A stretch of 63,974 nt of DNA, filler included, from Octopus bimaculoides (GCF_001194135.2; 8 parts of 7 records of this genome joined end to end with filler, not necessarily neighbours in it), one strand, 5' to 3'. Positions 1 to 11,814 are shown, counted from the whole stretch's first letter. Made by a program: numbers and translations. The notes: a model not told the origin generated them from the sequence alone.

Positions 1-29
1 TATATTTACTGTCTGCTTTGTATTAATAC

Positions 30-109
30 GACCCTGAAGAGATACAATATCCCATATTTTATAATATGCATGAATCGATCTGGATATTGCATCGAAATGA
101 TCATAGGTC
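30..109 (+). ncRNA. Minimal type-I hammerhead ribozyme motif (Penelope-like), intact core
   Basis: Stem I GACC(30-33)/GGTC(106-109); core CTGAAGA 34-40; stem II GATACAATATCC(41-52)/GGATATTGCATC(82-93), 11 of 12 paired; GAAA 94-97; palindromic loopless stem III ATGA/TCAT; cleavage triplet AUA (103-105). Confidence 0.72.
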
Positions 110-157
110 ATAATAAAGTCTTTACAATAGATCAGATGTTAGCTCTTGTTTAAATCG

Positions 158-159
<2 letters not shown>

Positions 160-190
<31 letters not shown>

Positions 191-514
191 TGTATGTATG
201 TATGTATGTATGTATGTATGCATGTATGTATGTATGAGTAGCGAACTGCTGCCAATCACATATTTCATTTTATCCCAACTGCTGATTTGCAGCTTTTACC
301 ACAACTATCACAGTTAATCCAATGCAAAACCATGGCACCGGCACTGTGTTTAAATATGTGTCTTCTCAGCTCACCAATAGAAGGGCAACATTTATAACAG
401 AATTGTCAGACATATCCTTTCAAGTAGTGAAGATTTACTATTAGCTTTGCTTTAGTTCATGTTTCCTAGAAACTGACGGAAGTAACCCTTCGTAGTCAAC
501 CTCAATATTAATAA

Positions 515-571
<57 letters not shown>

Positions 572-573
572 CC

Positions 574-639
<66 letters not shown>

Positions 640-652
640 CTCTATCTCTCTA

Positions 653-699
<47 letters not shown>

Positions 700-720
700 G
701 TGTGTCTGTGTGTGTGTGTG

Positions 721-789
<69 letters not shown>

Positions 790-818
790 GTTATTCTGTG
801 TACATGTACACACACGCA

Positions 819-857
<39 letters not shown>
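160..857. repeat. Compound microsatellite tract: (TATG)n, (CT)n, (CTAT)n, (GT)n, (CA)n
   Basis: Simple repeats visible directly; they account for the spurious ORFs 702..989 and 710..907. Confidence 0.95.
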
Positions 858-858
<1 letters not shown>

Positions 859-1044
859 CACAGCGTGTCACTTTGAGCCTCGATCTGCTGAATGTCGAAG
901 CCTTTGAGAAGTTTTACGAACGATTCCACTCGTTAAGGACTGAAGATGCAATCGGACTTAATAAAGCTGCTGCTAAGGGCCGTTGGTGAAAGTAATTAGT
1001 ATTGCGTGGAACAGCATCCCTTATGTTATTCTGGACTGGTGGCG

Positions 1045-1400
1045 GTTGTTATGGATCTCCGTTGTCTGACGGCGAGGATTCAGTTGTTTTGTCGACAGAA
1101 TTATCTGCTCCTGAATTAACTTGTAAATGGATGAGTATTCCCCAGACACATGTACCTTTAACGTAATTCTCAGAAAAAATCCGTCTGACGCATAAAGTGA
1201 GAATACTGTGCCCTTTGGAATGACAGATACAACCCCTCCAACAGGTTACTGTACAGTTTCCGTCTACTCAGTTTATCGTACAAAATATGAGTCGACCCAA
1301 AAGTGTAGAAGATAGCATTTGTCCAAGATGTCACACAGTAGGATCAGTACTGGGACCCCGTGGTTGCCAAGTCATTTTCTTAAGCATTTCGCCACACTCT
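1045..1400 (-). mobile_element. Decayed SINE fragments (3' part of family C, head of family A)
   Basis: 1045-1160 aligns to the reverse complement of the SINE 3' end at 34230-34345; 1250-1400 resembles the family-A head (cf. 31961-32120). Confidence 0.7.
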
Positions 1401-1459
1401 AGCTTGGTCGTGGATTAACCTTATGGAAATGGAAAACAAGCGAAGATATCAGGCATAAT

Positions 1460-1907
1460 ATAATCCTTTCTACTATAGGCACAAAGCCTGACATTTTAGG
1501 GAGAGGGGACTAGTCGATTACATCGACCCCAGTTCGTAACTGGTACTTATTTCACCGACCCCGTAAGGAGGAAAGGTAAAGTCGACCTCGGCGGAATTTG
1601 AACTCAGAACGTAAAGACGGACAAAATACCGCTAAGTATTTCGTCCGGCGTGCTAACGATTCTGCCAGCTCACCACCTTTAAAATATTGGTTTCAAATTT
1701 TGGCACAAGGCCAGCAGTTTCGGGTGGGGCGGGGTGTAGGTCGATTACATCGACCCCAATACTCAACTGGCACTCATTTTATCATCTCTGAAAAGATGAA
1801 GGATGAAGGGCAAAGTGGACCTCGCGGAATTTGAACTCAGAACGTAAAGACAGATGAAATGCCACTAAGCATTTTGTCCGGCTTGCTAACGATTCTGCCA
1901 GCTCACC
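1460..1907 (-). mobile_element. Two tandem copies of a short tRNA-headed SINE (family B, ~220 bp)
   Basis: Two head-to-tail copies of GGCGGTGAGCTGGCAGAATCGTTAG...GTTCAAATTCCGCCGAGGTCGACTTT...AAGTACCAG with A/B-box-like motifs; many other copies in the window. Confidence 0.85.
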
Positions 1908-1908
1908 T

Positions 1909-1934
1909 GAACAACAACAACAACAGCAACAACA

Positions 1935-1965
<31 letters not shown>

Positions 1966-2032
1966 CAACAACAACAACAATAATAATAATAATAATCATC
2001 ATCATCATCATCATCATCATCATAATAATAAT
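1909..2032. repeat. Compound trinucleotide microsatellite (AAC/AGC/AAT/CAT)
   Basis: Visible directly; ends about 25 nt upstream of the splice acceptor at 2056-2057. Confidence 0.95.
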
Positions 2033-2057
2033 ATCACATTCTTCCTAATTTCTTCAG

Positions 2058-2178
2058 GGTTTGGACGCGCCATTAAGTTCTGCAGCTTTCGAGGAATCAA
2101 ACTTTTGTCCGGATCTCGGCTAAAAACTCAAGACTGTTTCTCTTGTAACTGCACAACCGAAAAACTAAAATGTTGTGG
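2058..2178 (+). CDS. Beta-microseminoprotein/PSP94-like protein, internal coding exon
   Basis: Acceptor ttcttcctaatttcttcag, donor GG|gtaagt. Encodes (x)FGRAIKFCSFRGIKLLSGSRLKTQDCFSCNCTTEKLKCCG with the C-x17-C-x2-C-x-C-x6-CC motif of the beta-MSP N-terminal domain. Confidence 0.85.
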
Positions 2179-2289
2179 GTAAGTTTTGCATTTGTCTTTA
2201 GTAATTCACTCACAGTGGACAGTCATTAGTCATAAGTCACATTTCTGATGATCGGCATCTGCTTGTGTAACTCCTAGTAACAGAACATG

Positions 2290-2327
<38 letters not shown>

Positions 2328-2777
2328 TGGACATGCACAAACACAAATACATACACATACTCACACACGCAGGCATGCATGCACACCCACACACGTATCA
2401 CACAAACACACACACACTCACACACACACACTCACACACACACACTCACACACACACTCACACACACACACTCACACACGCATGCATGCACACACAAAAT
2501 CACAAACACACACACACACACTCACACACGCATGCATGCACACACACACTCACACACACACACTCACACACGCATGCATGTACACACAAAATCACAAACA
2601 CACACACACGCATATATACATACACACACATATAAACATACGTTACATTCTTTTTTTTAGGAAGTTTTAAGTTATTGCCCGTCACATACGTTGCTTAAAC
2701 AATGGCGCAGTTGAACCGGTTTACTTTCGTGTCTGTGTATTGGACGCGTTACCACCGCCGATGTTTGTTTCGTTTAC

Positions 2778-2827
2778 CTCGGGTCTGATTTCATTGTTGC
2801 TGGAGTCGTTGCTGGTGCTGATGTTTC
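2778..2827 (-). other. Candidate small antisense exon (ETSAPATTPATMKSDP)
   Basis: Minus-strand tttttttag acceptor and GAG|gtaaac donor around non-repetitive sequence; no homology recognised. Confidence 0.2.
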
Positions 2828-3094
2828 CTAAAAAAATTACATTACTGCTGAATGCCTTCCATTGTGCTGCTTTTCCGGATATGAGATCCACTGACGACAC
2901 AGATATTATATATGCTTTCACACATTTCCACACATATACACACCCATATACATATATATATATATGTAGAATGCATATAAACAAATTTAGGCTAATGACG
3001 TAATATAATAGGTGTGTATGTAAGTGCACGGATTAGTTTACCACTAAAACTCCGGCTTGAACTGCATCTAAAACAAAAGAGGTGTAGGAGAATA

Positions 3095-3290
3095 TACAAA
3101 TAATAACAACAGACGAGGACAGGTGGTGTAAATAACAAAAGTATATATTAGTATGACGCTCGGGAATACGGAAAGTCTTTGACGTTTCGAGCTACGCTCT
3201 TCAACAGAAAGAATACGGAGACAAGGAGAAAAACACGGAGAAAAAAAATTGAATAGTGTTCAGTCAACGGTCAATCATAATAATGGAGGT
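3095..3290 (-). mobile_element. Penelope-like terminal-repeat fragment with hammerhead motif (3176-3212)
   Basis: Minus strand TCTTT-CTGTTGA-A-GAGCgtaGCTC-GAAAC-GTC-AAAGA: perfect stems I and II, GUC triplet, core A6 mutated to U. Same family as 62682-62745. Confidence 0.65.
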
Positions 3291-3617
3291 GTAGCTGCTT
3301 ATCAAAGATGGCTATAAGTGGTTCATGATTGAGCGTGTTAATATACATTAGGAAGAGAGAATGAACAGACAAAACATGTGGTATCACTTTAGAACATGCA
3401 ATTTATAATACGGACATAATCGCAGAGTGGTTATAGTAAACACAGGATTAAGAAATAATGTGAAAAGTCTCTTACAGTTGTTTCTAGAATAGCTGAGTAT
3501 GTGGAGCAAATCTCCTTGATTAAAAATTACCATGTGAGACAGCAATTCCAAATACAGAGTAGGCCAAAAATCACGCACTAAAATATTGATGTTTTTTAAA
3601 AATATTACGTCATTATT

Positions 3618-3647
<30 letters not shown>

Positions 3648-3648
<1 letters not shown>

Positions 3649-3945
3649 GAAACCTCACAGCTTATTTTGCTGGGTATGATGGAAAGTGTCAGCTGTCCAC
3701 AACTAGCAGACTAGCATGACAACTAGCATGACCAGCAGACTGGTCATGCTTCAAGAACCCCGCGAAGAATTCTTGCAGTTCCAAGCAATGCTGATTTCCC
3801 TTGGTGTTCTACCTTCACACTTGCACCAATCTTTTTCAGCCATGTTGGTAGTTGAGTGCTGATACTTCTAAGTGCATCAATTACTATTGTAATCACATCT
3901 ACTCTCTTCATTGACCACAAACATTTTGTTCCCCATGCACAAATC
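3648..3945 (-). mobile_element. R4/Dong-like RLE non-LTR retrotransposon 3' fragment
   Basis: Minus frame LWSMKRVDVITIVIDALRSI...KSALLGTARILRGVLEA* matches the C-terminus of the 58948-60759 element; 3' end abuts (TAA)n at 3612-3647. Confidence 0.75.
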
Positions 3946-4294
3946 CATGTGCATTCCCCCTTATTTTATTTATCTTATTCAATTTTAGAAAAATCAAAGC
4001 ATGTTTTTGACAATTACGGAACGTATTGACTTCATTTTGTGCGTGACCTTTGGCCCATCTAGCATATAATATACATTCAGTGGCCGAATAAAAAATGCTG
4101 TAACTAAAGTTGCGGTAGTTTCTCCTTTCCGGTTTTCAGAATTCACCGAAAATAACAGAAAGTAGAACTTAAAAATTGTAGTGGTCATTGAGCATGAATA
4201 AATATATTTGTGGCACTCTACGGATAATATCAGGTTCTCTGTTTACATTGTTGATATTTATACGGAAACATGACTAGCGTCACACACACACACA

Positions 4295-4357
<63 letters not shown>

Positions 4358-4729
4358 NNNNNNNNNNNNNNNNNNNNNNNNNNNNNNNNNNNNNNNNNNN
4401 NNNNNNNNNNNNNNNNNNNNNNNNNNNNNNNNNNNNNNNNNNNNNNNNNNNNNNNNNNNNNNNNNNNNNNNNNNNNNNNNNNNNNNNNNNNNNNNNNNNN
4501 NNNNNNNNNNNNNNNNNNNNNNNNNNNNNNNNNNNNNNNNNNNNNNNNNNNNNNNNNNNNNNNNNNNNNNNNNNNATATAAGAGGAATGACCACTAGGTA
4601 GATTCCTAATATGCTAAATATAGACACCATAGGGTCTGACCACTAAGAAACGATTTGCAGACATTTACTTAATGTAGATAGTAACAATATAACCATGGTA
4701 TGTGACTAATCACGTACCATGTGATTAGG

Positions 4730-4830
4730 GGGTAGATGTTTTCAAGAAACAACTCGATCCCCTGCTGTCCAATGTCTCAGACGAACCTATATCACAGCAA
4801 GAAACTCAATCACATAAGAATGGTCATTGA
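4730..4830 (+). mobile_element. LINE (CR1/L2-type) 3' remnant
   Basis: Reads VDVFKKQLDPLLSNVSDEP, resembling the FKxxLDxxLxxxPDxP C-terminal motif of CR1/L2-group ORF2. Confidence 0.5.
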
Positions 4831-4909
4831 ACAGGTGATGACACTTGCCGTAATGCAGCGTCGCCTCTCATCTGTTGGCGATCGTTCCTTCTTTCTCTTT
4901 GGACTTTCC

Positions 4910-4946
4910 TATTTCCGACGAAGAGCTAAGCTCGAAACATTAACAA
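4910..4946 (+). ncRNA. Degenerate hammerhead-like motif
   Basis: CCGACGA-A-GAGCtaaGCTC-GAAAC-ATT; stem II intact, core U4 mutated, stem I and III decayed. Confidence 0.35.
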
Positions 4947-4984
4947 CAACTCTCTCCCTTCACCGTTTTTAACTGTTTATTTAA

Positions 4985-5019
<35 letters not shown>

Positions 5020-5297
5020 CATGCATGAAGGAAAGCATCTTTCTTCACGATACTTAAAATCCTAACCATGTTTTGCGGGATACTGTAATCATTTGTATGA
5101 ATTAAGAAGTTGTATTTTCTCTCCAACAGCCCCAATTCCGCCAGACGAGTTGGTAGGATTATTAAGAATATGTAGGAAGCTGAAATTGTACCTTGGCTAC
5201 CGGATTAACGGGCCCCTTATCAATGGCTTACAGACTTTTTCCCTGCATCTTCTCAGACCGTATTTTATGTATGAATGTATGTATATATGCACGTACG

Positions 5298-5338
<41 letters not shown>

Positions 5339-5348
5339 NNNNNNNNNN

Positions 5349-5384
<36 letters not shown>

Positions 5385-5853
5385 CGTGCGTGTATGAATG
5401 CATGTATGTGTATGTGTATGCATACTATACATACATACATACATATATACATACATACATACATACATATATACATATATACATAAATACACCTATATAA
5501 GCATAAATACATACATATTTACATCAACAACGAGTCTAGCCTGTGTAATTTCCCAAAACGAAAGCCACTCAATTAAAGTAGGAGACATACCACACGCACC
5601 AACACACACACACACACACATATGTGTGTATACACTCTCTCCATCTGTTTCCCATAGAAATGAAAGAATTTATATTAGATTCTCGTTTACTATTTGCATT
5701 CCTTTATATATCTTAGATAATCGCTGCCTGTTTTGAATTCTTACCGGAAACGCCACGTATATATACACATACATAAATACTTACACACACAGATATATAT
5801 ATATATATATATACACACATGTTTGTGTGCATACATACGTATGTATGTATATA

Positions 5854-6070
5854 CAAACGGGTTCTGAAAAGTTCCTGACTTTAAAGTTGTGGCGTGAGGC
5901 CTGGCTGGAGGAGGCCCAACCTTCCGAGTTCTTTTACGAGGCTTAGAAAAACTGATGGTCCCCTGCAATAAGTGTGTGAATCTGAGAGGGGAATATGTTG
6001 AATGAAATCATAATTAACTGACCCTTCTGTATTTTCTTTTACCCAAAGCCAGGAATTTTTCAGCACCCCT

Positions 6071-6073
<3 letters not shown>
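5854..6073 (+). mobile_element. Internally deleted mariner (MITE-like)
   Basis: Imperfect TIRs (GGGTTCTGAAAAGTTCCTGACT / AGCCAGGAATTTTTCAGCACCC); interior encodes a transposase-like C-terminus LMVPCNKCVNLRGEYVE*. Confidence 0.75.
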
Positions 6074-6133
<60 letters not shown>

Positions 6134-6884
6134 CACACACACACACATATGGACATGTGCTCTTTTCTGACCGGCCATGACTAACGGCCTCATGATATAC
6201 ATACATACGTACATACCTACATACATACATACGTACGTACATACATATATACATACATACATACATGCATACATGCATACATACATACATGCATACATAT
6301 ATACATACATAAATAAATAAGTAATTACTTGGACCTTGTGTATATGGTTAATAGTATACCGATAAAAGCCCTGTCACAGTTTAGGCCATGTCTTCCATAG
6401 ATTTGGTAAAAGTGTCATTAGATCTACTTCAGGATTTCTGCAGTATTCGTTGAGTTTATAACGAATGAAGGAAACGGAAAATGGAGTTCGCAAGAATCTT
6501 TATTTAGCAGAACGATCGTTTCTACCCATCCTGCATCTGTCCCCTGTGGGTGGGATACTGTACAAATGGTTTGTGTTGCTTCCTCCAGCGCAGAATGCAT
6601 CTCATCGGATGTCTTGTTTGAAATAATATATATTTACACATTATATTCATACACACACACACACACACACACATATAATACACATGCACATACATGTATA
6701 TGTGTATGTGATGACATACACATATCTGTATCACTCGACAGATGCAATACCTAACTCCAGTCATACACAGGTGCGTGATGGGCGTACGTGCGTGCGTGTA
6801 TGTGTGTGTATGCGTGTGTGTGTACGTATGTGCATGTGTGCGTGTGCATGTGCGTGTGTGTGTGTGTGTGTGTGNNNNNNNNNN

Positions 6885-6923
<39 letters not shown>

Positions 6924-7050
6924 GTATACTCAAATAACAGATAATAGAGAGATACTTTGCTTTGGTTTTGTTAAAAATAAAAACAGAAACGGTTCCTCTT
7001 GCTCGATTGGTTTATCCTTCTATTTTTTCTTTTTGTGTGTGAAATTGCAG

Positions 7051-7216
7051 GTTTGGTGTGAACAGCGGTTTGCACGTGGTTCCAAGACATTGCAAGATGC
7101 TGAAGGACGGCTGCACCCCACACTATGTTCGTCGGGACAACGAAAACGTCGATTGTGTTTCCGGTACACCGATAATGATCGACGATTCTGCTCATAAGAA
7201 ATCAGACCACGACTAA
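7051..7216 (+). CDS. Beta-microseminoprotein/PSP94-like protein, terminal coding exon
   Basis: Acceptor tttttctttttgtgtgtgaaattgcag; its first G completes the phase-2 Gly. Encodes FGVNSGLHVVPRHCKMLKDGCTPHYVRRDNENVDCVSGTPIMIDDSAHKKSDHD* (stop 7214-7216), supplying C-x6-C-x13-C of the beta-MSP C-terminal domain. This frame is absent from the ORF track. Confidence 0.85.
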
Positions 7217-7619
7217 AAATGATTACTGCTGCACATTGTTCGACTCACCGACATGAGGCATGAATAAGAACTACTGGAAAAACAGTCAAACTATGCACGG
7301 CATTCATTGTGGCAAATTAGAATAGAATATAAGTATTTTAGTAAGCAACTTATATTTTAGTTTTCTTTTTGCTTTTTTTCCAGGTTCGAATCCTGGCTAA
7401 CGCATTTGATTTTTGTGGTTGTCACGGTGACCACTCGAAGATAATTTCACATCATAAAATTTTAACTGATCTATCCTGACTCCCCTAGACCGACTGTCAA
7501 GTGGAACTAGTGACCTTCATGCGTCATATTTAACGATTATCATCACTTACCTCTTCACACCATCCTTTTTGAACCACCACCACCATCATCACCATCGTCG
7601 TCATCATCGTTATTTTGTT

Positions 7620-8288: not shown

Positions 8289-9672
8289 GTCAGAGAAAAT
8301 AGCTTGTGATATTTCTTCTGGCTTTTTACGTTCTGAGTTCAAATCCTACTAAAGTCAACTTTGCCATTCATTCTTCCGAGTTCAATAAAATGAAGAACTA
8401 GTCAAGTATTGGAGTCGATGTAATCGACTGCTCCTCATTGTGACAAGAACCTTGCACGGTAGGAAATTCTCCGAACGTTTGCGAACCATTTCGATTCATA
8501 ATTGAAACCTTCTCATTTCTCTATATTCATCGGGAAGGTCATAAACATCACAGCACTTCATTTTCCGTCATGGATAGAAAACAAATATCCAGGCTTCATG
8601 TAATCCTTACCAAATCTCTCAACTCAATATTTTCAGCTTTATAATCAACCAAAATCCTACGTTTCCCAATAACACCAACAATATTTTTAAAATTCAGTTT
8701 CTTGTAACAACGTATGTTTTCATTAAACCATTTAACAGTAATATATTTCTTCGCTTTTTCATTTCTGGTCTGTTATCTGAACGAAAACAGTAAACAATGA
8801 GAGACAATGAGTATTTCATAATCAGAAAGACCATCTTGGTATTTTGAGAACATCGAAACAAAAGGTTATCGGACTACAACTGGAAATGTAGATAGTAACA
8901 TGTTGTATTAAGTGTTTATACAGTAATCCCTCGACTATCGCAGGTGTTATACAGAAATCCCTCAACAACCGCCCCGCGATAAGTGAAAATCCGCGAAGTA
9001 GAAACAGTACTGTACTGTATATTTCTTTAAAATTATTTTTATGATTTGTATGTATTTATTTTATTATAAATGCAAAACAACACCACGGAGGAATCGATGT
9101 AAGCTTAAATAATAATCCACGAGAGGTGAACTGTGATATGGCGAGGAATTACTGTATCTGTAAATAAGTACAAAAAGATGTTATACAAGGCGAGAGCAAT
9201 ATTAAAGATGGAATATTGAAATAGAATTGTTATTAAGATAAAATATTAGATATTAAAAAAAAATATTGTGATATTTCTTCTGGCTTTTTACGTTCTGAGT
9301 TCAAATCCTACCGAAGTCAACTTTGCTATTCATTCTTCCGAGTTCAATAAAACGAAGAACTAGTCAAGTATTGGAGTCGATGTAATCGACTGCTCCTCAT
9401 TGTGACAAGAACCTTGCACGGTAGGAAATTCTCCGAACGTTTGCGAACCATTTCGATTCATAATTGAAACCTTCTCATTTCTCTATATTCATCGGGAAGG
9501 TCATACACATCACAGCACTTCATTTTCCGTCATGGATAGAAAACAAATATCCAGGCTTCATGTAATCCTTACCAAATCTCTCAACTCAATATTTTCAGTT
9601 TTATAATCAACCCAAATCCTACGTTTCCCAATAGCACCAGCATATTTTAAAAATTCAATTTCTTCACTTGTA
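8289..9672 (+). repeat. Local ~410-bp direct duplication (8289-8708 and 9267-9672)
   Basis: Near-identical copies comprising a SINE-B body plus about 270 bp of non-SINE flank, differing by scattered substitutions. Confidence 0.9.
8921..9154. mobile_element. Tc1/mariner (pogo/Tigger-like) MITE
   Basis: TIRs CAGTAATCCCTCGACTATCGC / reverse complement CAGTAATTCCTCGCCATATCAC, TA dinucleotide on both sides. Confidence 0.8.
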
Positions 9673-10459: not shown

Positions 10460-10890
10460 TTACCCGGCTTTCATGGCGTATAAATGACTGGGGTGACAGC
10501 AGCCCCCTTGAACGGGACACCGGTCTATCGCAGAGCTGCTCATTTCTGCCAGGTCAATGGACTGGAGCAACGTGAAATGAAGTGTCTTGCTCAAGAACAC
10601 AACGTGTCGCCCAGCCCGGTAATCGAAACCATGATCTCAAGATCATGAGTGCAACACTCCAAACTACTAAGTCACGCGGCTTCAAATTTTGGCACAAGAC
10701 CAGCAATTTCGGGGTAGAGCAAAGTCGATTGCGTAGGGCTTAGTGTCCAACTGGTACTTATTTGATCGACCCCGAGTGGATGAAAGGCGAAGCTGACCTC
10801 GGCGGGATTTGAACTCAGGACGTAAAGGCGGATGGAATGCTGCTAAGCATTTCGCTCTACGTGCTTAACGATTTTGCCAGTTCGCCGCCT
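10460..10890 (-). mobile_element. Adjacent SINEs (family D 10460-10683, family B 10683-10890)
   Basis: tRNA-like heads on the minus strand; family D body CTTGAGCAAGACACTTCATTTCACGTTGCTCCAGTCCA matches 29379-29687. Confidence 0.8.
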
Positions 10891-11711
10891 TACGATTCTT
10901 TATTAATACGAAAACAAAATAAAGTTAGCATCCGTATAAATCATCTTTATTCGCTATGGCGGTGGACAAGTTTAAAAAGTTTAAATCCATTTGAATATTA
11001 TTAAATATAGCAATGTACCTCCTTCTCTTTTCAGTCGTTACTGCACCCCCAACAACCACAAGTAGGAACATTGGTTTAGAGAATAACGAAAACAAATATG
11101 TCACATACCTACACAGCTTATTTCTCTAACATCTATAAACAAATATACAACCGCATACATATGTCTGTAAACTGCATATCATTAGACAAGCTATGTTATT
11201 CGTCCGTAAAGCTACATATTTTATGCAATTTTGTCCTAGATTTCCGACCATATGTTACGTACTCGCGATTTAATTAGGGTCACTTCCGGTTTAATGTAAC
11301 AACTACCAGAAAAGTCAATGTAAATCCTGAAACAAAAAATATAAAACAATTTAACAATAACAAACAAGTTTTAGCTAACATTAGTTTGGTTCAGGAGCAG
11401 AACAAGATGGCAGCGTGTCTCTTCTGCTCGAAAATACTCATTTAAACTTCCTCTCCTACATAAACCATCATATGACACATTACATATTTATCTTTGATTT
11501 TTGTTTTTGTTGAAATTTCTATAAAATTGAAAGCATTAATTATAACGAAAAGTATTACAATAATTAGAACGTAGCTAACAGCCAGAATTGTGTTAGAGGC
11601 TGACTATGGTTGTTCGGTATTATTACAAAAGTTAAATGAGTAAAGATGACATTGAATATCTGCAGCACATTAGCAAACTGTAACAGCCGACACACACAGA
11701 CACACACACAC

Positions 11712-11754
<43 letters not shown>

Positions 11755-11814
11755 NNNNNNNNNNTACACACACACACACACACACACACGCACGCACGCA
11801 CGCACACACCTACA

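Follow-up and report, generated by a model that had tools for sequence, protein, structure and literature searches.

A beta-microseminoprotein (PSP94) family gene of Octopus bimaculoides: coding exons, family assignment and candidate extracellular roles

Two short segments, 2058-2178 and 7051-7216, lie on the plus strand of a 63,974-nt stretch of DNA from Octopus bimaculoides (hereafter the window; 8 parts of 7 records of GCF_001194135.2, joined end to end with filler). They raise the question of whether they belong to a single gene, which protein family this gene would represent, and what its product would do. A preliminary description, generated from the sequence alone, interpreted them as a hidden two-exon gene resembling beta-microseminoprotein (PSP94, MSMB). 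In this study, we consider the segments to be coding exons 2 and 3 of the O. bimaculoides beta-microseminoprotein gene, and we place a probability of about 0.9 on this statement, family assignment included; the value covers the gene model and the family assignment and does not extend to the mechanism. The gene is an already annotated, ordinary member of a known family. It is located on CM046604.1 (chromosome record, GCA_001194135.2) at about 145.237-145.251 Mb, and the window corresponds to L001:12168-26158 of the genomic locus.

The gene model and its support

The borders of exon 2 read ttcttcAG/GGTTTGGACGC...ATGTTGTGG/GTAAGT (the 3′ end is also given as TGTTGTGG), and those of exon 3 read aaattgcAG/GTTTGGTGTG...GACCACGACTAA (end also given as CACGACTAA). 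Joining the two exons completes the split codon GG/G, which encodes Gly, and the spliced translation is a 94-aa peptide that matches, end to end and with 100% identity, residues 36-129 of the 129-aa protein "beta-microseminoprotein [Octopus bimaculoides]" in NCBI, UniRef and EukProt. The sequence reading and the database match confirm the two exons, the canonical GT-AG sites, the matching phase and the spliced peptide of the preliminary description. However, the gene cannot be called hidden, because the identical 129-aa model was already present in these three databases, and it has three coding exons rather than two, the first of which is outside the window. The upstream exon that had been expected to carry the signal peptide, the first cysteine and a phase-1 donor was found 2065-2167 nt upstream of window position 1, beyond a gap of 1406 N (Table 1). 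A tblastn search with the full precursor detected no exon 1 in window 1-2057; the 5′ part of intron 1, the 1406-N gap and coding exon 1 are all upstream of the window.

All three exons have GT-AG sites, and the intron phases are 1 and 2. Exon 1 contributes the signal peptide and the tenth cysteine. Cys 2-7 and the greater part of the N-terminal Greek-key domain are encoded by exon 2, and exon 3 supplies the C-terminal domain, which holds Cys 8-10, and an acidic/basic tail that is not conserved. The motif C-x2-C-x-C-x(5-7)-CC has a single occurrence in the six-frame translation of the window, besides one poly-Cys run without coding meaning.

The precursor of 129 aa begins with a hydrophobic signal peptide, MYQLHLILLCVSFCSLFRPTAS, encoded by exon 1. 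This segment was recognized by inspection, with a mean Kyte-Doolittle hydropathy of 2.28 over residues 5-17, T at position -3 and S at position -1. The mature chain starts with FCYEQ, comprises 107 residues (about 12.1 kDa) and is basic, with an isoelectric point (pI) of about 8.6. Its ten cysteines occupy positions 2, 21, 39, 42, 44, 51, 52, 67, 74 and 88. Cys 2-10 align column for column with C18-C87 of human PSP94, and the tenth octopus cysteine is the second residue of the mature chain, a position that is likewise filled by cysteine in human (SCYF) and chicken (RCYF). The octopus spacing reported earlier (x17, x2, x1, x6, CC, x14, x6, x13) is correct, and the human PSP94 spacing set beside it (x18, x2, x1, x6, CC, x13, x8, x13) matches the PDB sequence. 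By analogy with chicken MSMB3 (PMC8167871), the octopus disulfides would be C24-C74, C43-C66, C64-C73, C61-C96 and C89-C110 (precursor numbering), and the family pattern is 1-7, 2-5, 4-6, 3-9 and 8-10. An N-C-T sequon occupies precursor residues 65-67 (Asn65; window about 2145-2153), between two disulfide cysteines, and it has been kept in Octopus, Argonauta and Sepia.

Three assembly gaps fall within intron 2 and touch no coding sequence (Table 1). No exon or genuine reading frame spans these gaps, which leave nothing uncertain but the length of the intron (nominally 4872 nt). Because each of the assembly gaps in Table 1 lies within a CA/TG/GT/AC dinucleotide repeat, the gaps seem to mark microsatellites at which the assembly broke, and not lost unique sequence. 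A coding exon concealed in one of the gaps was considered and rejected: the gapless Argonauta orthologue has the same 121/166-nt exons, separated by a 1041-nt intron, and Sepia esculenta mRNA contigs are colinear over the junction. The absence of the exon 3 frame from the open reading frame (ORF) track, which the preliminary description had remarked upon, is accounted for by length, because this frame appears only as a 52-aa GTG-started ORF (7058-7216) and the usual floor is 60 aa. Upstream of exon 2, an AAC/AGC/AAT/ATC trinucleotide microsatellite runs in frame with the exon, and a spurious 107-aa ATG-started ORF consists of poly-N/S/H followed by the real exon 2. The true start of exon 2 is the acceptor at 2057/2058.

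The orthologue of Argonauta hians ("beta-microseminoprotein-like") is 82% identical to the octopus protein at full length and 87% identical over the two window exons. Its coding exons measure 109/121/166 nt, compared with 103/121/166 nt in octopus, and the splice sites and phases are identical. The proportion of synonymous differences between the two species (pS) is 0.81, at which synonymous sites are saturated, whereas the nonsynonymous proportion (pN) is 0.093, and 0.063 in the mature core; because of this saturation, raw pN and pS proportions are used here and no dN/dS ratio is given. The gene is under strong purifying selection relative to Argonauta. In Sepia esculenta, the orthologue (P0003; 57% identity) forms an uninterrupted 387-nt ORF on RNA-seq contigs of about 1 kb (45 index blocks; 24 contigs were read). 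Three Sepia runs were traced by accession to S. esculenta papers, and the one that was checked is RNA-seq of newly hatched larvae. Because an intact ORF is found on S. esculenta RNA-seq contigs, the exon junction CCG/FGV is transcribed in cuttlefish, and the cuttlefish orthologue is active in hatchlings. Expression in O. bimaculoides rests on the public annotation and on these orthologues.

Tandem paralogues, for which a check of the flanking sequence had been proposed, were absent within 10 kb on each side of the gene, both in octopus, where the flanks contain many N gaps, and in Argonauta, where they are gapless; six-frame profile scans detected nothing beyond the two domain exons. Each of the two loci, in octopus and in argonaut, apparently holds a single copy. 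Two matches were rejected as low-complexity or chance, neither having the Cys motif on translation: a weak match at L001 6709-6867 (E-value, hereafter E, 0.068) and the 'MYQFYLLLLCFA' match at L002 21608-21573. In addition, an exon-3-like genomic sequence (FGINAGVSHLPSHCKILVDGCQ..., 49% identical) was observed at L013 154-399 (Logan run SRR29346471), with an acceptor at the same position as that of octopus intron 2. This sequence may represent another mollusc or a paralogue lineage.

Membership in the PSP94 family

Membership of the octopus protein in the beta-microseminoprotein (PSP94) family is well supported, and the family call of the preliminary description is upheld by profile, fold and intron-position evidence. 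PSP94 (PF05825) is the sole Pfam match, with 15.6 bits for the two-exon peptide and 14.1 bits for the full precursor, and the curated cut-off is 22 bits; a single-sequence scan of the Argonauta orthologue gave no Pfam PSP94 match. In a single-sequence search of the PDB, the best three matches were all beta-microseminoproteins (E 0.04-0.08). These single-sequence results are weak but agree with one another, and the profile searches decide the matter. An exhaustive HMMER search of 1.84 billion representatives returned 65 relatives at E<1e-3, and 18 of them match Pfam PSP94 (best E 1e-8). The 30 named relatives come from bivalves, gastropods, a chiton, the brachiopod Lingula, bdelloid rotifers and amphioxus, and several are called beta-microseminoprotein or beta-microseminoprotein-like. 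When a family profile, made from a trimmed 47-sequence alignment with the octopus protein as its head, was searched against all PDB sequences, only 2iz4, 1xhh, 2iz3, 3ix0, 6rwc and 6imf_B matched (E 1.4e-9 to 1.5e-7). These six entries are the human, porcine and chicken beta-microseminoproteins and the snake protein SSP-2. Moreover, an hhalign comparison with chicken MSMB3 gave a probability of 96.35% (E 1.5e-9).

The fold points in the same direction. With the 47-sequence alignment, AlphaFold2 returned a model of nine strands with a predicted local distance difference test (pLDDT) score of 93.8 and a predicted template modelling (pTM) score of 0.70; an earlier prediction from two sequences only (pLDDT 32) was useless and has been superseded. 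The best Foldseek match of the model in the PDB is chicken MSMB3 (6rwc_A; E 4e-5, template modelling scores 0.68/0.76), followed by SSP-2 (6imf_B), the human PSP94 crystal structure (3ix0) and the human beta-microseminoprotein structure obtained by nuclear magnetic resonance (2iz3). We therefore predict, with high confidence, the family fold, in which an N-terminal Greek-key beta-sheet domain is tied to a small C-terminal beta domain. The preliminary description had treated a two-domain beta fold as a check on its reading, and such a fold is indeed predicted, with the MSMB structures as its closest relatives. A VWC-domain reading was rejected, because VWC ranks behind the MSMB entries in Foldseek, with E >= 0.04.

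The gene structure provides a further line of evidence. The octopus gene has a phase-2 intron in the Gly codon that follows Cys-Cys, and the genes of Argonauta, Lingula and amphioxus have it as well; a middle exon of 121 nt occurs in octopus, Argonauta hians and Lingula anatina. An exon-per-domain layout has been described for MSMB, MSMP and USM (PMC3268785), and the octopus gene agrees with this layout at the level of exons and domains. An automatic family name that single-sequence Pfam does not support is thereby placed on firmer ground by profile, fold and intron position.

It might nevertheless be argued that the segments are non-functional, that is, a chance ORF pair, a decayed pseudogene or an annotation artefact, and the sub-threshold Pfam score and the missing exact O. 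bimaculoides transcript contig agree with such an argument. However, the frame is intact and holds all ten cysteines, Argonauta shares the splice sites and exon sizes despite saturated synonymous sites, the Sepia orthologue is transcribed, and the profile and fold matches are significant. We consider a non-functional origin to be extremely improbable.

Candidate extracellular functions

The secreted octopus protein would act outside the cell as a compact, protease-resistant and disulfide-locked binder, and its exposed N-terminal edge strand would pair with a beta-strand of its partner, which would most plausibly be a protein of the CAP/CRISP superfamily. Such strand pairing joins PSP94 to CRISP2, to CRISP3 and to yeast Pry1, and it joins SSP-2 to triflin (PMC8857485); the mode of strand pairing between PSP94 and CAP proteins has been called evolutionarily conserved (PMC8857485). 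In the octopus model, a strand is predicted at the N-terminal mature residues C-Y-E-Q-N. By analogy with these complexes, we tentatively propose extracellular CAP/CRISP-type binding by edge-strand pairing as a possible function.

Several points weigh against our reading of the gene and its product. At the position of PSP94 Phe24, a contact predicted by docking, octopus has Glu, and the residue found there differs among members of the invertebrate family. The signal peptide was called by eye, and the disulfide pairing in octopus is taken from homology rather than read from the model. Both single-sequence Pfam scores are below the 22-bit cut-off, and no transcript contig on record encodes the exact O. 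bimaculoides protein.

The roles in octopus that the preliminary description suggested, as a pheromone or in CRISP/venom binding, are speculation. There is a slim chance that this strongly conserved beta-microseminoprotein (beta-MSP) of octopus, argonaut and cuttlefish is a dedicated, high-affinity binder of cephalopod CAP/CRISP-type proteins, such as those that the posterior salivary (venom) gland secretes, in which case it would be an invertebrate counterpart of the SSP-2/triflin self-protection of snakes. Equally slim is the chance that it is the true orthologue of the squid aggression pheromone, which solitary octopods would have kept and put to a different chemosensory use.

According to Cummins et al. 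(2011), as cited in PMC4500399 and PMC3268785, a beta-MSP-like protein of the loliginid egg capsule triggers male aggression. The octopus gene might be the orthologue of Loligo beta-MSP, whose product passes from female reproductive glands to the eggs and serves as a contact chemosignal that changes the behaviour of conspecifics, and the octopus protein does belong to the same family and is predicted to be secreted. However, no squid protein was returned when the peptide, the family alignment or the Sepia orthologue served as query in homologue searches, and among the 30 named relatives no cephalopod occurs besides Argonauta. The social context of squid is also absent in octopus, the females of which brood alone in dens. 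Furthermore, cephalopods possess at least two MSMB-like lineages, one of which is unusually constrained (Frankenberg et al. 2011, PMC3268785), and the octopus gene, under strong purifying selection, differs from species-recognition MSMBs, which have been reported to evolve rapidly (PMC3268785). The cuttlefish orthologue, for its part, is transcribed in whole hatchlings and not in adult females alone. Hatchling expression and purifying selection speak mildly against a fast-evolving signal of species recognition with a purely female-reproductive role, and the same two facts fit better with a conserved, housekeeping-type extracellular role. Orthology to the squid chemosignal, with the same function, is unlikely in our view.

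The expression of the Sepia orthologue in hatchlings would also suit a mucosal or embryonic protein of innate defence, antimicrobial or antifungal, comparable to MSMB3 of chicken egg white or to candidacidal PSP94. Antibacterial and antifungal activities have been reported for members of the MSMB family (PMC8167871), the best structural match of the octopus model is MSMB3, an antibacterial protein of the egg, and the mature octopus protein is basic (pI 8.6). In addition, an MSMB-annotated gene, possibly the orthologue described here, has been reported as up-regulated in malformed Sepia esculenta larvae and was grouped with disease-related genes (PMC5085775). The likeness to MSMB3, however, reflects family membership and not function. 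A defensive role is rather unlikely on this balance.

The relatives in bivalves suggest yet another role, that of a structural or extracellular-matrix protein of the egg coat, the cuticle, the beak or radula, or the matrix of a shell remnant. Pinctada fucata PfN44 (E 1.6e-16), which the literature treats as a nacre/shell matrix protein, is among the closest non-cephalopod relatives, several bivalve proteins combine the domain with long low-complexity tails, and USM is a component of the marsupial egg coat (PMC3268785). By contrast, the octopus protein has no long repetitive tail, with only 19 residues after its last cysteine, and the octopus has no mineralized shell. We regard a matrix function as very unlikely. 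Extracellular binding of a CAP/CRISP-type partner is the function that we would put forward, tentatively, for this gene.

The existence of MSMB-like genes in molluscs, including cephalopods, was reported in 2011, and the gene itself adds nothing new in this respect. Its slow evolution and the expression of its orthologue in cuttlefish hatchlings make it useful for testing whether beta-MSPs of non-loliginid cephalopods act as chemosignals or as CAP binders.

Besides the gene, the window contains microsatellites, a duplicated segment of 408 nt and interspersed repeats that include a tRNA B-box-like motif; searches of the window for tRNA genes, Rfam families and further non-repetitive ORFs of at least 90 aa found none. 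Three copies of an interspersed element of about 160-230 nt, 68-90% identical, are present, and two of these form a tandem pair shortly before exon 2. Because GCGGAATTTGAACTCAG, which occurs in the element, is a tRNA B-box-like motif in reverse complement, the element may be a short interspersed nuclear element (SINE). A similar motif, GGTTCGAATCC, lies downstream of the stop codon. Downstream of the gene, a segment of about 408 nt occurs as two direct repeats that share 96.6-97% identity and lie at a distance of 962 nt.

Table 1. Features of the octopus locus; positions refer to the window unless L001 is given.
Feature	Position	Strand	Description
Coding exon 1	L001 10001-10103	+	encodes MYQLHLILLCVSFCSLFRPTASFCYEQNANTEFT plus one base; donor A/GTAAGT, phase 1
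Intron 1, 3′ part	1..2057	+	ends with a polypyrimidine tract and acceptor ...cacattcttcctaatttcttcAG
Coding exon 2	2058..2178	+	121 nt; phase 1 on entry and phase 2 on exit; (R)FGRAIKFCSF...KLKCC(G)
Intron 2	2179..7050	+	GTAAGT...TTGCAG; phase 2, within the Gly codon after Cys-Cys
Exon 3, coding part	7051..7216	+	166 nt including stop TAA 7214-7216; (G)FGVNSG...KKSDHD
Assembly gap in intron 2	4358-4575		dinucleotide repeat 4281-4357
Assembly gap in intron 2	5339-5348		dinucleotide repeat 5302-5393
Assembly gap in intron 2	6875-6884		dinucleotide repeat 6788-6922
Assembly gap	11755-11764		dinucleotide repeat 11690-11809
Spurious ORF	1859-2182	+	107 aa, ATG-started
Trinucleotide microsatellite	1910-2035		AAC/AGC/AAT/ATC
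Interspersed element, three copies	1512-1674, 1740-1907, 10723-10885		candidate SINE
B-box-like motif	7383-7393		GGTTCGAATCC
Direct repeats	8296-8703, 9258-9664		about 408 nt each

Comparison with known systems

Vertebrate MSMB/PSP94 (PF05825; 3ix0, 2iz3, 1xhh, 6rwc) resembles the octopus protein in being secreted, in its size of about 10-12 kDa and in its ten cysteines, which occur in the same order with nearly the same spacing and include one at mature position 2. The two-domain all-beta fold, which is predicted in the case of octopus, is also common to both, as is the use of separate exons for the signal peptide with the N-terminus, the N-domain and the C-domain (PMC3268785). However, the octopus protein is only about 16-22% identical to the solved structures and scores below the Pfam single-sequence cut-off. 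The loop between Cys 8 and Cys 9 has 6 residues in octopus instead of 8, and the octopus chain carries a charged tail, 19 residues in length, after the last cysteine. The Asn65 sequon occurs in the three cephalopods, whereas the vertebrate forms have been described as non-glycosylated (PMC8167871). Furthermore, vertebrate MSMB evolves fast (PMC3268785), whereas the cephalopod protein is strongly conserved.

The egg-capsule contact pheromone of Loligo (Doryteuthis) pealeii, according to the account of Cummins et al. (2011) cited above, is likewise a secreted cephalopod protein of the same family.

Snake SSP-2 (6imf_B) has the same fold as the octopus model, is its second-best structural match and is matched by the family profile. 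With regard to the PSP94-CRISP complexes, the octopus model has a predicted N-terminal edge strand, and the docking-predicted contact Phe24 of PSP94 corresponds to Glu in octopus. The SSP genes of snakes occur in tandem arrays (PMC6609765), in contrast to the octopus gene, which lacks a further copy in the 10 kb to each side.

The beta-MSP-like proteins of other lophotrochozoans (Lingula, Haliotis, Liolophura, unionid and pteriomorph bivalves, bdelloid rotifers, and PfN44) are 26-40% identical to the octopus protein. Many of the bivalve proteins differ from it in their long, low-complexity C-terminal extensions; P0010 (PfN44), P0004, P0005, P0011, P0015, P0021, P0025 and others, of about 185-440 aa, consist of an N-terminal domain followed by low-complexity tails. 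Haliotis and Lingula differ in having tandem duplicates, which lie on the same strand at L014 1913-5527 and 10001-12401 in Haliotis asinina and at L015 3594-6174 and 10001-12090 in Lingula anatina. Lingula nevertheless has the same three-exon structure as octopus, and all of these lophotrochozoan proteins have in common with the octopus protein the consensus C-x-Y-x-G-...-GS-x3-T-x-DC-x2-C-x-C-x3-GL-x-CCG-x-G-...-P-x-GC-x4-DGC-x4-V-x3-D-x4-C.

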